Shown in pieces: positions 4,368 through 9,621 of a DNA stretch of 64,000 bases. The stretch is from the sequence record NC_019526.1. One strand, 5' to 3'. Both the position numbers and the translations under genes were made by a program. Every line of letters begins with the position of its first letter. Within the stretch, counting starts at the first letter, position 1. The notes beneath the pieces are model-generated. The model had not been told where the DNA came from. It ran no database searches and was given only the letters and a program-made list of their open reading frames with translations.

Positions 4368-5264
4368 ATGAAAGAAGTTGATCTAAATGAACTAAGTGCT
4401 GAAATCATGGAAACATTATTTGATGAATCTGATATTGAGCAATCAAAAAATATTAAGAGTACAAAAGATAATATCAGTCTCAAACATCCAACTGGTGTTA
4501 CAAATGAAATGCTGTTAAATGAAATACATAATGGTATTAATGTAAAACAAAATCGTGAATTACTTATCCGTTATAATTATCCACTAGCAGTCAGTATTGC
4601 TAAACGTTGTAAATGTTATATTCCAGAAGAAGATAAAATTTCTTATGCAGTAGAGGGTCTTTTGAATTCAATTCATAATTTTGACCTTACAAAAGGTGTA
4701 TTATTCAGTACTTATGCCAGTGCTTCCATTTACATGACAGTGATGAACATGAGTAATGAACATAATAATTTAGTTTATATCCCCCGCCATGTAAGTGTAC
4801 ATAATGTTAATATTCGTAAATTTGCAAATGACTACGAAAAGAAACACGGCAAAAAATGCAAACCTGAACTTATTTCAAAAGAACTCGGAATTAATGTTGA
4901 TACTGTTGAGTTGTGTTTGTCTTTCCAGGAAACCACATCTCTTGATACTCCAACTTCTGACGATAGTACTGCACTAATTGATACCATTGCCAGTGATTGT
5001 AATGTAGAACAAAATGACGTTGATAGTATTGTTCTGGAATTGATGAATGAACTAGAACCAAAAGAAAAGGAAATCCTTTCCAGAATTTATGGTTTGAATG
5101 GATATGCACCAGAAACCTATGATAGCTTGATTAGTACTGGATTTTATGATAAAAAGGGTAAACGTATCACTGTTCGCGGAACTTTACATTACAAATTCAG
5201 TACTGCACTTGAGAAACTAAAGCGTTTGGTTCGTCTAAAAGGATTAACTGCCAAAGATGTTTAA
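4368..5264 (+). CDS. RNA polymerase sigma-70 family factor
   Basis: Region 2 (NRELLIRYNYPLAVSIAK; EGLLNSIHNFDLTKGVLFSTYA), region 3 (VYIPRH...SLDTP), region 4.1 (LEPKEKEILSRIYGL). Confidence 0.9.
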   Translation: MKEVDLNELSAEIMETLFDESDIEQSKNIKSTKDNISLKHPTGVTNEMLLNEIHNGINVKQNRELLIRYNYPLAVSIAKRCKCYIPEEDKISYAVEGLLNSIHNFDLTKGVLFSTYASASIYMTVMNMSNEHNNLVYIPRHVSVHNVNIRKFANDYEKKHGKKCKPELISKELGINVDTVELCLSFQETTSLDTPTSDDSTALIDTIASDCNVEQNDVDSIVLELMNELEPKEKEILSRIYGLNGYAPETYDSLISTGFYDKKGKRITVRGTLHYKFSTALEKLKRLVRLKGLTAKDV

Positions 5265-5290
5265 ATTGATATTTTTTCTTTATTAAATAC

Positions 5291-5319
5291 TTGAACAAAA
5301 TTTTTTACAGTGATATAAT
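5291..5319 (+). promoter_or_regulatory. sigma70 promoter feeding an ORF-less region
   Basis: TTGAAC-17-TATAAT with extended -10 TG. Confidence 0.75.
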
Positions 5320-5325
5320 GTTTGT

Positions 5326-5940
5326 AATACATGGATGTTGGACATTCTTTTTGAAAAGAACGTATGGATAAAAACCCGATTAGCCGAAAATGTAACGCTA
5401 CGGATGAGTATAACCAACATATACGAGATGCAGAGGATACCCGAAAGGCGAGACGGCATCTAAAAGGATAGGAAATAGCACTGCCTATCCCAAGCTTACA
5501 TTAGGCTTGATAGATCGCAAATCTGGTTGAGTCCAGACAAATAAAGAGTGTAAGGGAGATTATTTTCTTTTAGATATTTTGGAAATAATCACAGTATTGA
5601 ATTGCTTGAATAGTTCGGTACTGAAGTGCAAGTATGTTTAAACTTGTGACCGTTGCATGTGACTGCGATAGGACGAAACAGGGCAACCCGCGTTCGTGTA
5701 CCAAAAGGTATAATTCGCAATTCAAGGAATTTCGACAGCTACGAGCTTCAAGGCTTAGCTTTTTATTTCTCTTCCCCTCCCTGTGGGGGGATGAAAATAT
5801 CTCGTGCAAACGCCTTCAAGTATTGAAATTCACGAAGTGAATTGAAATTACTTGTTCTGTAGTCGAACGACAGTGAGACGTGAGAACAAGTAATTTCTGC
5901 ATGTATCAACGAAGTGACAACGAGTTGATACATAGCACTT
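5326..5940 (+). ncRNA. candidate large structured ncRNA / structured DNA element
   Basis: About 600 nt, no credible ORF, raised GC, many hairpins and long-range pairings (5598-5606/5717-5725; 5845-5859/5883-5897). Confidence 0.5.
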
Positions 5941-6008
5941 TAAAACATTATTGAATTCAATAATTAATATTATTATGGTTATTGAAGAAATCAAATCGGA
6001 GTACTGAA

Positions 6009-6209
6009 ATGAACACTATTATTTTTTTGATTATACTGAGTACTGGAACAACTACTACAGTAATTAAAGAAATGCCTTCTTTAGTACAATGCAAAGTAAT
6101 TATGAATTCTGTTTATAAACAACAAAAAGAAAAACAAAAAGAAACAAGTAAAACAGATTACTATTGTTTGAATTCAACAACTAACACTGAGTACTACCCA
6201 GATGAATGA
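6009..6209 (+). CDS. small secreted/membrane protein
   Basis: GGAG SD, hydrophobic N-terminus, two Cys. Confidence 0.7.
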   Translation: MNTIIFLIILSTGTTTTVIKEMPSLVQCKVIMNSVYKQQKEKQKETSKTDYYCLNSTTNTEYYPDE

Positions 6210-6389: not shown

Positions 6390-7280
6390 ATGACTTTAAG
6401 ACTTATTACTGAAGTAGATAAATCAGTAAGTGAATTAACAAATGAAGAATTGAATAAATTGGACTGGAGTTCAGTACCAAAATCACAACTTCCTTCTATT
6501 TCAGATGATCGTTTAATGAAATGTCCCATCGACATTTTAACTCAAAGTTTTTCTTGTGATAACTATAGCAATGATTTGTGTTTATATATACTCACTTCTA
6601 AAATAAAGAAGTGTAAAGATTTTCGAAATGGTTATGCATTATATCATTTATTAAGTAATTTTTTTAATCCAGATTTTATCAAGAATAATAAAAAAGAAAT
6701 TCTTGAAATGTTAAAACGACATGAAGAGATTCATAGTACTGTTACGTTTCCATCAGTTATTCAATACCTGATGAAACATGGAATCATTTCATTTTTTGAT
6801 TTAAATATGACATTTGAAACAATCAATGACACATGGGACGCACTGGAATCAAATATTCCACAAGAAGATTGGATTAAATTAATCACACGTACAAATTACC
6901 TGTATTCAACACTCACTGAACACCATTCAATACAGAATAATGTAATACCATTAAGCACTGAAAACTTATGGAAATGTGGGATTAAAATTAATCCAGTTGT
7001 TGATCTGTCGTGGGTTAAAAATGGCACAGATGAATGTGATGATGATTATGTAGAAATTTTACTGGAAGATTTAATAGAACAATTAAATTGTACTTCAATC
7101 ACATGGGATGAAGTACTAGAAAAGTTCAACACATATAAACTTGATAGGGATAACAATCCCCCTTATGGTGTTAATTTTATCAGTACTGTATGGGAACATC
7201 ACATAATTGACACAAAGTTTGAATTGAACAGAGATGATTTTTTCAAGAAAAATTTACATCTTTACAAAACTATTGGATAA
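6390..7280 (+). CDS. hypothetical protein
   Basis: 296 aa ORF; no family recognised. Confidence 0.85.
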   Translation: MTLRLITEVDKSVSELTNEELNKLDWSSVPKSQLPSISDDRLMKCPIDILTQSFSCDNYSNDLCLYILTSKIKKCKDFRNGYALYHLLSNFFNPDFIKNNKKEILEMLKRHEEIHSTVTFPSVIQYLMKHGIISFFDLNMTFETINDTWDALESNIPQEDWIKLITRTNYLYSTLTEHHSIQNNVIPLSTENLWKCGIKINPVVDLSWVKNGTDECDDDYVEILLEDLIEQLNCTSITWDEVLEKFNTYKLDRDNNPPYGVNFISTVWEHHIIDTKFELNRDDFFKKNLHLYKTIG

Positions 7281-7345
7281 AAGTCTTGACATGGAGTACT
7301 ATTTGAGTAATAATACTCCTATCTTAATTTAATGAGGAAACACTG

Positions 7346-7510
7346 ATGAAAACTCTATTACTTATTGTAGTCGTGGCTTTTGGTGCATGGTGGTTTTCTG
7401 AAAATTTTAGTATAACTTCAAAAAATGAACCACAACCTGTTCCACAAGAAGTACATACAGATTCTATTGGAACTAAGGTTGATAAAATAATTAAAGTAAT
7501 TACGGAATAA
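7346..7510 (+). CDS. small membrane-anchored protein (54 aa)
   Basis: Own TTGACA/TAATAC promoter, GAGG SD; below ORF-track cutoff. Confidence 0.65.
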   Translation: MKTLLLIVVVAFGAWWFSENFSITSKNEPQPVPQEVHTDSIGTKVDKIIKVITE

Positions 7511-7515
7511 ATGTT

Positions 7516-7908
7516 ATGGGATTAGATGTAACTGAAGCTCAAACACTATTAGAAAACCTTAGAGAAATTAATTCAAAATTTGAACGTAATAATCTCTGTA
7601 CTGAATGGGATAAAAAACTACCCAATAGATTTAGTGAAATCACCAATGAAATTTTATTCAGTACTGGTTTAGTTTGGATTGAACATACTTCTCTGTATAA
7701 TGTTACATATCGCCATGAAGGTTATGTTGTTGAATACAATGAATATCTAGATCAGGGCATGAAAGTACTCAAAATGTGGAGTACTGTTTATAACGAGCTA
7801 GTAATTATCTGGATTAATGACAGTAATGGTGTTGACTTTGGTGATTTAGAAGAAAGCACTACTAAGGTAGCACCAATTTTTATTGGTTTGTCTGATAATA
7901 CTATGTAA
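7516..7908 (+). CDS. hypothetical protein
   Basis: Packed + strand ORF. Confidence 0.75.
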   Translation: MGLDVTEAQTLLENLREINSKFERNNLCTEWDKKLPNRFSEITNEILFSTGLVWIEHTSLYNVTYRHEGYVVEYNEYLDQGMKVLKMWSTVYNELVIIWINDSNGVDFGDLEESTTKVAPIFIGLSDNTM

Positions 7909-8641: not shown

Positions 8642-8742
8642 ATCAAGACAAGTAGTAGCTTAATATGTTCAAGAGCAGCGAGCAAACACAGCATAATGGT
8701 ACTCGTCTGTACAGGTTGCATTCCTGTTTACTTGTCTTTGAT
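8642..8742 (+). ncRNA. tRNA-like RNA with extended acceptor stem and 19-nt anticodon loop
   Basis: D arm GCTT/GAGC, anticodon stem GCGAG/CTCGT, T arm ACAGG-TTGCATT-CCTGT; no CCA; directly after TTGACA-16-TATAAT (8608-8635). Confidence 0.6.
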
Positions 8743-9534: not shown

Positions 9535-9621
9535 ATCAAGACAAGATTAGTTCAGTAGGTAGGAACCGTTCTATGTGTATCTAAGAATAAGTTGTGGTTC
9601 GATTCCCTATCTTGTCTTGAT
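9535..9621 (+). ncRNA. tRNA-like RNA with 12-bp acceptor stem and 11-nt anticodon loop
   Basis: ATCAAGACAAGA/TCTTGTCTTGAT stem, D arm GTTC-AGTAGGTAG-GAAC, T loop GG-TTCGATT-CC; directly after TTGACA-16-TATAAT (9500-9527). Confidence 0.65.

Follow-up and report, generated by a model that had tools for sequence, protein, structure and literature searches.

Here, we describe a gene for a structured RNA in the Klebsiella jumbo phage vB_KleM_RaK2 (NC_019526; hereafter RaK2), found within a 64,000-nucleotide (nt) stretch of DNA, the window, that corresponds to RaK2 genome positions 186001-250000. The locus lies on the plus strand at window 5291-5940 (genome 191291-191940), and it is close to certain that it is a structured-RNA gene whose family is described neither in Rfam 15 nor in the papers searched. 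Sequence comparison gave 100% identity of the region to RaK2 positions 191200-192000. We lean toward reading it as the gene for a stable, compact non-coding RNA (window ~5326-5940/5985, plus strand) that belongs to a new multi-copy family and, with about the same modest preference, toward an RNA that acts in trans and forms a new class loosely comparable to the phage RNAs ROOL and GOLLD. An initial annotation of the window had proposed a novel large non-coding RNA here, and this proposal is now borne out by a conserved promoter of its own, the lack of any conserved open reading frame (ORF), extensive covariation, the absence of an Rfam family, and the absence of a description in the literature searched. 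The ~600-nt extent given for it (5291-5940) needed revision: the locus is indeed a separate unit with its own promoter, but it runs on to ~5985, the end point of identity with a second RaK2 copy, and comprises a body of ~490 nt and a hairpin tail of ~120-160 nt.

Covariation supports a conserved fold on the plus strand

Homologous copies were compared in three sets, i.e., 47 non-redundant copies, 27 genomic copies, and an alignment of the conserved core, with helices numbered P1-P16 in the body and T1-T3 in the tail and two pseudoknots designated PK1 and PK2. Across the 47 sequences, P5, PK1, PK2, P11, and P12 are 100% paired, in 11, 5, 14, 11, and 11 distinct complementary strand pairs, respectively, and sliding one strand by 1-3 columns as a control left 20-69% paired overall (25-51% for P5 and 20-43% for PK2). 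Counted by alignment cell, PK2 is paired in 266 of 267, while PK1 takes the forms GUUGC/GCAAC, GUUGU/ACAAC, GUUAC/GUAAC, UCUGC/GCAGA, and GUCAU/AUGAC. RNAalifold found compensatory changes in 45 of 69 predicted pairs for the 27 genomic copies (32 of 74 for the first seven sequences), so that the covarying pairs expected among related jumbo phages are present. In the core alignment, 92% of cells are paired versus 81.3 ± 0.8% in shuffles (none of 500 shuffles was as high), 14 pairs are changed in both strands, with a covariation score of 0.358 versus 0.167. Several G-U or U-G pairs, including some in P9, are invariant or nearly so; they would become A-C on the opposite strand, and because these conserved pairs work on the plus strand only, the plus strand is taken as the functional one.

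Thermodynamic and compositional signals were also found. The minimum free energy of the plus strand is -187.2 kcal/mol, compared with -143.3 ± 6.4 in dinucleotide shuffles (z = -6.9), and the GC enrichment noted initially was confirmed, at 0.385-0.44 G+C over 5300-5899 versus 0.23-0.35 in the flanks. A search of the whole window against Rfam 15 (4227 models, including 6S, RNase P, tmRNA, group I and II introns, GOLLD, ROOL, OLE, HEARO, raiA, and ribozymes) returned no match at the gathering score, in agreement with the first impression that the RNA fits no known class. With permissive filters, the best scores over 5100-6200 were 13.7-18.4 bits (E = 3.3-9.6) against thresholds of 40-200 bits, i.e., noise only. 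No description of the element was found in the literature searched.

Three copies within RaK2

The window copy (copy A) has two relatives elsewhere in the same genome. Copy B, at genome 279671-280313, is 84% identical over 279671-280296 in a BLAST comparison of RaK2 against itself, and copy C, at ~6770-7560, is much more diverged and carries a double compensatory change in PK1. Copies A and B form a mosaic in which the promoter is conserved, the 5' third is ~30% diverged, and 435 nt (~5550-5985) are identical apart from one interrupting hairpin that carries a 7-nt indel. Because the identical 435 nt adjoin a diverged 5' third, this pattern, as read from the two sequences, indicates recent gene conversion between A and B.

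The diverged third is informative in itself, as both strands of four hairpins change together from A to B with pairing kept: GAUGC/GCAUC becomes CGUGU/ACACG, GGAUAGG/CCUAUCC becomes GGGCAA/UUGCCC, CAAGCUU/AGGCUUG becomes CAAUCUC/GAGAUUG, and UCUGG/CCAGA becomes UCCAG/CUGGA. The hairpins P6, P6.1, and P7 all show such compensatory changes between the two copies.

A branched body knotted by two pseudoknots

The body consists of ~16 helices, is closed by a weak long-range helix (P1), and has a core knotted by the two pseudoknots; its junction sequences are highly conserved (Table 1). For P1, RNAalifold predicted an equivalent long-range helix on the first seven sequences, and the UUGAC/GUCAG of other phages appears as UUGGA/UUCAA or UGAA/UUCA in RaK2 copies. 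Its support consists of a single replacement of C-G by A-U among the RaK2 copies together with G-U/A-U variation, and in the RNAalifold prediction for the 27 copies an alternative partner is the UGA of GAUGAG. Elsewhere the pairing is better documented: in P3, seven of eight pairs change on both sides (27 copies, alignment columns 119-129/140-149), and in P9 eight of 12 do so. PK1 joins the P12 loop to an upstream strand, and PK2 joins the P9 loop to a strand directly 3' of a P11 strand, a position from which P11 and PK2 can stack.

Most stems listed in the initial annotation reappear in this fold. Its GATGC/GCATC stem is P5 (paired in all 47 sequences, in the 11 strand pairs given above), its GGATAGG/CCTATCC stem is the covariation-backed P6, its CC-GAAA-GG is the shortened tip of P5a, and its 15- and 10-base-pair (bp) stems fold as described, as T2 and T3 within the variable 3' tail. 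Others had to be redrawn. The supposed GG-GCAA-CC hairpin does not form, its GCAAC being the 3' strand of PK1. A long-range pairing near 5600/5720 does exist, but 5598-5606/5717-5725 proved to be two helices, PK2 and P11, rather than one. Finally, the pairing 5556-5567/5793-5803 found no support, and 5558-67 pairs locally in P8.

Table 1 Features of the window copy, with window coordinates
Feature	Position	Strand	Remarks
Promoter	5291-5319	+	-35-like TTGAAC 5291-96, 17-nt spacer, TG 5311-12, -10 TATAAT 5314-19
P1, 5' strand UUGGA	5338-5342	+	Partner 5815-5819; closes the ~480-nt body; weakly supported
P2 hairpin	5345-50/5355-60	+	Sequence differs in copy B, pairing kept
P3	5376-78/5401-03 and 5381-84/5397-5400	+	Conserved CGAAAA-GUA loop; sequence differs in copy B, pairing kept
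GAUGAG	within 5345-5424	+	Invariant
P4	5408-12/5420-24	+	2 of 3 pairs change on both sides (columns 154-156/168-170, 27 copies)
P5 GAUGC/GCAUC	5427-31/5456-60	+	Surrounds the P5a tip and an internal loop that is conserved
P5a tip CC-GAAA-GG	5441-48	+	Shortened form
P6 GGATAGG/CCTATCC	5466-72/5484-90	+	6 of 6 pairs vary on both sides (27 copies, columns 303-309/340-345)
P6.1	5491-97/5503-09	+	Only in RaK2 copies A and B
GAUAG	within 5466-5537	+	Conserved
P7	5522-26/5533-37	+	
AAGGGAG	5552-58	+	Near-invariant; AAGGGA invariant in 27 copies, final G in ~90%
P8 hairpin	5558-67/5581-90	+	Variable sequence and length in homologues, e.g., GCCA-GAAA-UGGC
P9 hairpin	5593-5604/5611-22	+	6-nt loop CUUGAA (5605-10) is the PK2 5' strand
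PK2 CUUGAA/UUCAAG	5605-10/5721-26	+	P9 loop to strand directly 3' of P11 strand
P10 hairpin	5627-33/5642-48	+	Loop contains the AUG of annotated ORF245
ORF245	5634-5840	+	68 amino acids, hypothetical protein (RefSeq); most likely not a gene
PK1 GUUGC/GCAAC	5652-56/5683-87	+	3' strand inside P12 loop; joins upstream strand
P11 UGCGA/UCGCA	5664-68/5715-19	+	
P12 GGACG/CGUUC	5671-75/5691-95	+	
P13 hairpin	5697-5702/5707-12	+	Variable
P14 hairpin	5734-39/5745-49	+	Followed by U-rich linker
P16 hairpin CCCC...GGGGGG-AUGAA	5772-81/5786-95	+	93% paired in 47 sequences
CAAAC	between P16 and P1 3' strand	+	Conserved
P1, 3' strand	5815-19	+	
3' tail	5827-5985	+	T1 5827-33/5837-43; T2 5845-59/5883-97; T3 5901-10/5923-32

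Copies A and B of RaK2 belong to the shortest members of the family. Other copies have a longer P5a/P5b closed by CCGU/ACGG, where C-G becomes G-C in RaK2 copy C, and many carry an extra conserved module at P8. This module, UUGUACAAUAUAGAUCCGUCCAAAAUUUG, caps P8 in some copies and P13 in others, as would be expected if both tips come to lie at one site of a fixed three-dimensional fold. P15, a canonical-looking, terminator-like hairpin of 6-7 bp followed by U6-U8, is present in about half of the genomic set of 27 (e.g., the copy at 258 kilobases (kb) in phage CBB). It lies between P14 and P16, upstream of the conserved P16 and P1 3' strand, and may give rise to short and long forms of the RNA. 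Copies A and B lack the UUGUACAAUAUAGAUCCGUCCAAAAUUUG module, the P5b extension, and P15, whose equivalent place in the window is ~5750-5770.

The tail is variable, following the same plan in homologues but with other sequence. Its hairpins T1-T3 bear repeated ACGAAGUGA-type loops, and six of the nine plus-strand occurrences of ACGAAGTGA in RaK2 fall in the three RNA tails, with none on the minus strand. The flanking G-A/A-G of this loop motif could form tandem sheared pairs, and the motif might serve in protein binding or tertiary contacts. Separately, an AT-rich, perfect 16-nt palindrome (TTATTGAATTCAATAA) lies at 5949-64, after the last tail hairpin and within the tract identical in A and B; it could be a weak signal for the RNA 3' end or a protein-binding site.

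The annotated ORF245 is most likely not a gene

RefSeq places a hypothetical protein, ORF245, within the region, and a similar MFK...TVA.DCD reading occurs in a few copies. That the region encodes this protein is nonetheless effectively refuted, as its frame is broken in copy B by the 7-nt indel, leaving 43 amino acids; its start codon lies in a hairpin loop missing from about half of the copies, whose P10 is short; the longest ORFs of the 27 copies (23-82 amino acids) differ in frame and position, with none conserved; and substitutions track base pairing rather than codons. The annotation should accordingly be corrected, with ORF245 and its counterparts most likely not genes.

A conserved promoter of the class that also serves tRNA genes

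The extended -10 promoter described initially (TTGAAC-17-TATAAT) was recovered at its given place, and the predicted transcription start is ~5326. A single match of this kind is unremarkable in AT-rich DNA (13 found versus 17.6 expected), and its weight comes from conservation: a TGnTATAAT extended -10 with a TGRRAC-like box at about -30 stands upstream of nearly all 27 genomic copies, with copy B of RaK2 lacking the TG. The layout matches the class of promoters that was reported as 'divergent RpoD-like' in CBB (PMC5259590). In CBB we found 37 sites of the form TGRAAY-N14-17-TGnTATAAT, all on the plus strand, which include all five RNA copies, and several sites of the class stand 40-50 nt upstream of tRNA genes.

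Given this conserved promoter and the selection on base pairing, we infer that the RNA is produced. No transcriptome study of the RaK2-like phage group was found in the literature searched, and no intrinsic terminator was detected downstream of the RaK2 window copy. As a side observation, a strong hairpin followed by U6-U7 lies between promoter and body in the XbC2 29 kb, CBB 32 kb, fHe-Yen9-04 24 kb, and 121Q 193 kb copies, while in the syntenic RaK2 copy B a homologous hairpin lies upstream of the promoter instead.

Distribution among RaK2-like jumbo phages

A covariance model built on the 109-position core was used to search six genomes whole, and it found three copies in RaK2, four in 121Q, and five each in CBB, XbC2, fHe-Yen9-04, and Hallingskeid. 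Copies in the five phages other than RaK2 scored E = 1e-11 to 1e-22 and lie on one strand per genome, and distant BLAST matches to the core in these same phages fall in gene-free gaps of 600-840 nt. A conserved 23-nt pattern located more copies in IMG/VR and metagenome contigs, nearly all in records of 350-370 kb. In bacterial species-representative genomes, all 23 pattern matches were rejected as chance, the other motifs being absent and the covariance model failing. By these sequence searches, the family is confined to RaK2-like jumbo phages, i.e., Alcyoneusvirus, Asteriusvirus, Mimasvirus, Eneladusvirus, and relatives.

Among CBB, XbC2, and fHe-Yen9-04, copies cluster by genome position and not by genome, and because of this grouping five paralogue classes are taken to predate these genera; the '94 kb' class also takes in one Hallingskeid copy. 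In RaK2, copy A is syntenic with the CBB copy at 336 kb, copy B with that at 32 kb, and copy C with that at 94 kb, and the RaK2 sites syntenic with the CBB 174 and 258 kb copies hold neither an RNA nor a remnant of a lost copy.

Neighboring and downstream genes are not conserved between copies or phages. The window copy is flanked by ORF244 (4368-5264) on its 5' side and by ORF246 (6009-6209) on its 3' side. ORF244 encodes a sigma-70-like protein (Pfam Sigma70_r3, E = 2e-6; Sigma70_r2, E = 1.7e-4), and this gene adjoins the window copy only. Upstream of copy B lies an ORF without a Pfam domain that bears no relation to the sigma gene, on which ground the link was dropped and the upstream sigma gene is regarded as incidental to the RNA. 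The suggestion that the RNA is a decoy binding RNA polymerase or sigma factor thus lacks support, with the sigma gene beside one copy only and a branched, pseudoknotted fold unlike the 6S rod. Two copies are isolated among opposite-strand neighbors: the CBB 174 kb copy, which ends in a bidirectional terminator, and the 121Q 326.9 kb copy, which is followed by a terminator-like hairpin.

By ARAGORN over the whole RaK2 and CBB genomes, the nearest tRNA is at least 9.5 kb away from any copy (9.5-236 kb; most copies >90 kb). The eight RaK2 tRNAs so called all lie at genome 176.5-182.0 kb, and no tRNA or tmRNA was called anywhere in the window. Separately, RefSeq lists pseudo 'tRNA-OTHER' features at window 8649-8735 and 9541-9616, yet ARAGORN calls no tRNA there.

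In the genomes with five copies, gaps between copies are 62-86 kb, with one orientation and a coefficient of variation of 0.08-0.21, and such spacing is improbable under random placement (P = 7e-5 to 4e-3). The CBB genome is linear with 22.5-kb terminal repeats (PMC5259590), and its end gaps of 33 and 42 kb are about half of the inner gaps. The gaps in RaK2 are 184, 88, and 73 kb (P = 0.22), and the 121Q spacing has P = 0.026. Because the four five-copy genomes share one ancestral layout, the spacing counts as a single observation. Cumulative GC skew and strand profile in CBB gave no origin-like signal at the copies.

Possible functions

We favor, with the modest preference stated at the outset, an RNA that would act in trans during infection as a folded particle, either alone, as a homo-oligomer, or with protein. 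The three RaK2 copies would then be partly redundant paralogues kept alike by gene conversion. This reading draws together units that stand alone, a class of promoter that tRNA genes also use, a globular, pseudoknotted fold with a movable module, and redundant paralogues. The units are regarded as stand-alone because of their conserved promoter, the isolation of copies among opposite-strand genes, and the non-conserved neighbors; the fold is regarded as globular because a peripheral module that shifts between P8 and P13 is typical of fixed three-dimensional folds.

Several observations weigh against a particle acting in trans. The functional part of the proposal is wholly inferential. The near-even gaps in five-copy genomes are not expected of a purely trans-acting RNA, a regulatory role in cis is hinted at by the internal terminator-like hairpin that about half of the copies have, and many copies continue directly into a downstream gene with no recognizable terminator. 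Further, public RNA libraries gave only low-depth contigs of 161-249 nt within the segment shared by A and B, and provide no evidence of transcription. The same libraries also gave contigs on neighboring coding DNA, and such contigs are not proof of a transcript because phage DNA in the libraries explains them equally well.

Regular spacing would be accommodated if each unit were a replication origin at which the folded transcript forms a persistent RNA-DNA hybrid and primes the leading strand, an alternative to which the initial annotation had also pointed but which we judge unlikely. The even spacing and shared orientation in five-copy genomes, the half-length end gaps of CBB, and the syntenic positions across genera would all suit it, as would a length and promoter-driven layout like those of ColE1 RNA II and the conserved G6/C4 element (P16) near the 3' end. 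However, RaK2 has just three uneven copies and no remnant at its two empty syntenic sites, and the striking spacing reduces to one inherited layout. The DNA 3' of the promoter has a higher G+C content than the genome and is not an AT-rich unwinding element, CBB skew is featureless at the copies, and the promoter class is generic, serving tRNA genes among its CBB sites. Finally, a doubly pseudoknotted body with conserved junctions far exceeds the needs of a primer.

The P15 hairpin suggests instead a giant leader acting in cis, which would control read-through either like a riboswitch at P15 or as a processive antiterminator like put or EAR. Consistent with this, about half of the copies have a canonical-looking hairpin and U run directly after the pseudoknotted core, a same-strand gene with a ribosome-binding site starts at most ~20 nt past the last hairpin in several copies, and no terminator follows the RaK2 window copy. 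We nevertheless regard a leader as quite unlikely: some copies stand by themselves between opposite-strand genes and have a terminator at their end, downstream genes differ by copy and phage with no constant same-strand association, P15 is missing from RaK2 A and B and from many others, and, with P16 and the P1 3' strand conserved downstream of P15, the conserved body itself needs read-through.

Very unlikely, in turn, is the spread of a mobile or selfish RNA through the genome, for instance a degenerate intron or a repeat with a ribozyme; multiple copies and the 435 nt identical between A and B would fit, but copies occupy syntenic sites across genera, interrupt no gene, lack target-site repeats, each have their own promoter, and match neither the group I and II models nor those of other ribozymes, while the A/B identity is explained by gene conversion, since the 5' thirds have diverged. 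Particular candidates were also considered and rejected. For a group I or II intron, the upstream gene ends in a stop at 5262-5264, the unit has its own promoter, and no intron model matches; for likenesses seen by eye to the hammerhead (CAGAUGAG) and to RNase P (AGAAACCCG), the order of elements is unfit and no model matches.

The family is a candidate new class of large RNA with unusually clean comparative support, and it is carried by phages that can be cultured and that infect Klebsiella, E. coli, Pectobacterium, Yersinia, and Erwinia. Copy number, syntenic persistence, and near-even spacing raise a possible link between a structured RNA and the organization or replication of very large phage genomes. 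We hold it to be rather doubtful, though conceivable, that the family represents a new class of catalytic or self-assembling RNA, or else structured pre-primer RNAs, placed at regular intervals, that mark multiple replication origins on 350-kb phage genomes. Were the origin reading true, it would amount to ColE1-like priming with a ribozyme-grade fold in a virus.

Comparison with known systems

Few natural RNA classes longer than ~400 nt are known to have a complex conserved fold. Promoter-driven RNAs of similar length exist in ColE1, whose RNA II is a ~550-nt transcript that depends on structure, and regular spacing would suit origins such as T4 oriF and oriG, which combine a phage promoter with R-loop origins and a transcript acting in cis. 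In the RaK2-type RNA, by contrast, no antisense regulator, RNase H site, or unwinding element was identified, the fold is pseudoknotted and globular whereas RNA II is a row of hairpins, and the spacing in RaK2 is uneven. 6S RNA is likewise non-coding, and the RaK2-type RNA could similarly be abundant in host takeover, with one copy beside a sigma gene; however, 6S is a ~185-nt rod whose central bubble mimics an open promoter, while the RaK2-type RNA is branched, pseudoknotted, and longer by a factor of about three, and the 6S models gave no match. The phi29 pRNA is also a phage-encoded structured RNA, and its copies work together as a particle by way of loop-loop contacts, but it is a ~174-nt, single-copy part of the packaging motor, to which we found no similarity.

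In the distantly related jumbo phage PA5oct, RNA-seq showed transcription of ncRNA004, a 619-nt 'putative lncRNA' (long non-coding RNA; PMC7318152). It shares with the RaK2-type RNA its size, the lack of an ORF, a sigma-70-like promoter of its own (TTGACA-type), and a U/C-rich CCC...GGGG hairpin near the 3' end that recalls P16. Searches of PA5oct with the core model (E = 1.55, elsewhere in the genome) and the family profile (E = 0.3) gave no significant similarity, and ncRNA004 is a possible distant analogue.

The closest functional analogues would be the large 'ornate' phage RNAs ROOL and GOLLD, which are phage-encoded, 500-800 nt long, and built of many helices with several pseudoknots, with no known protein partner or function (PMC12286853). 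The functions of ROOL, GOLLD, and OLE are still poorly understood (PMC12286853). As members of such a kind are, the RaK2-type RNA is phage-encoded, >500 nt long, and rich in covarying helices and pseudoknots. It differs in having no match to the ROOL and GOLLD models of Rfam, in lying away from tRNA islands, beside which those RNAs usually stand, and in occurring as 3-5 paralogues scattered over each genome under promoters of their own, in phages of Gammaproteobacteria with genomes of 345-380 kb. RNAs of the ROOL and GOLLD kind assemble as RNA-only homo-oligomers, a form in which the RaK2-type RNA may also act.

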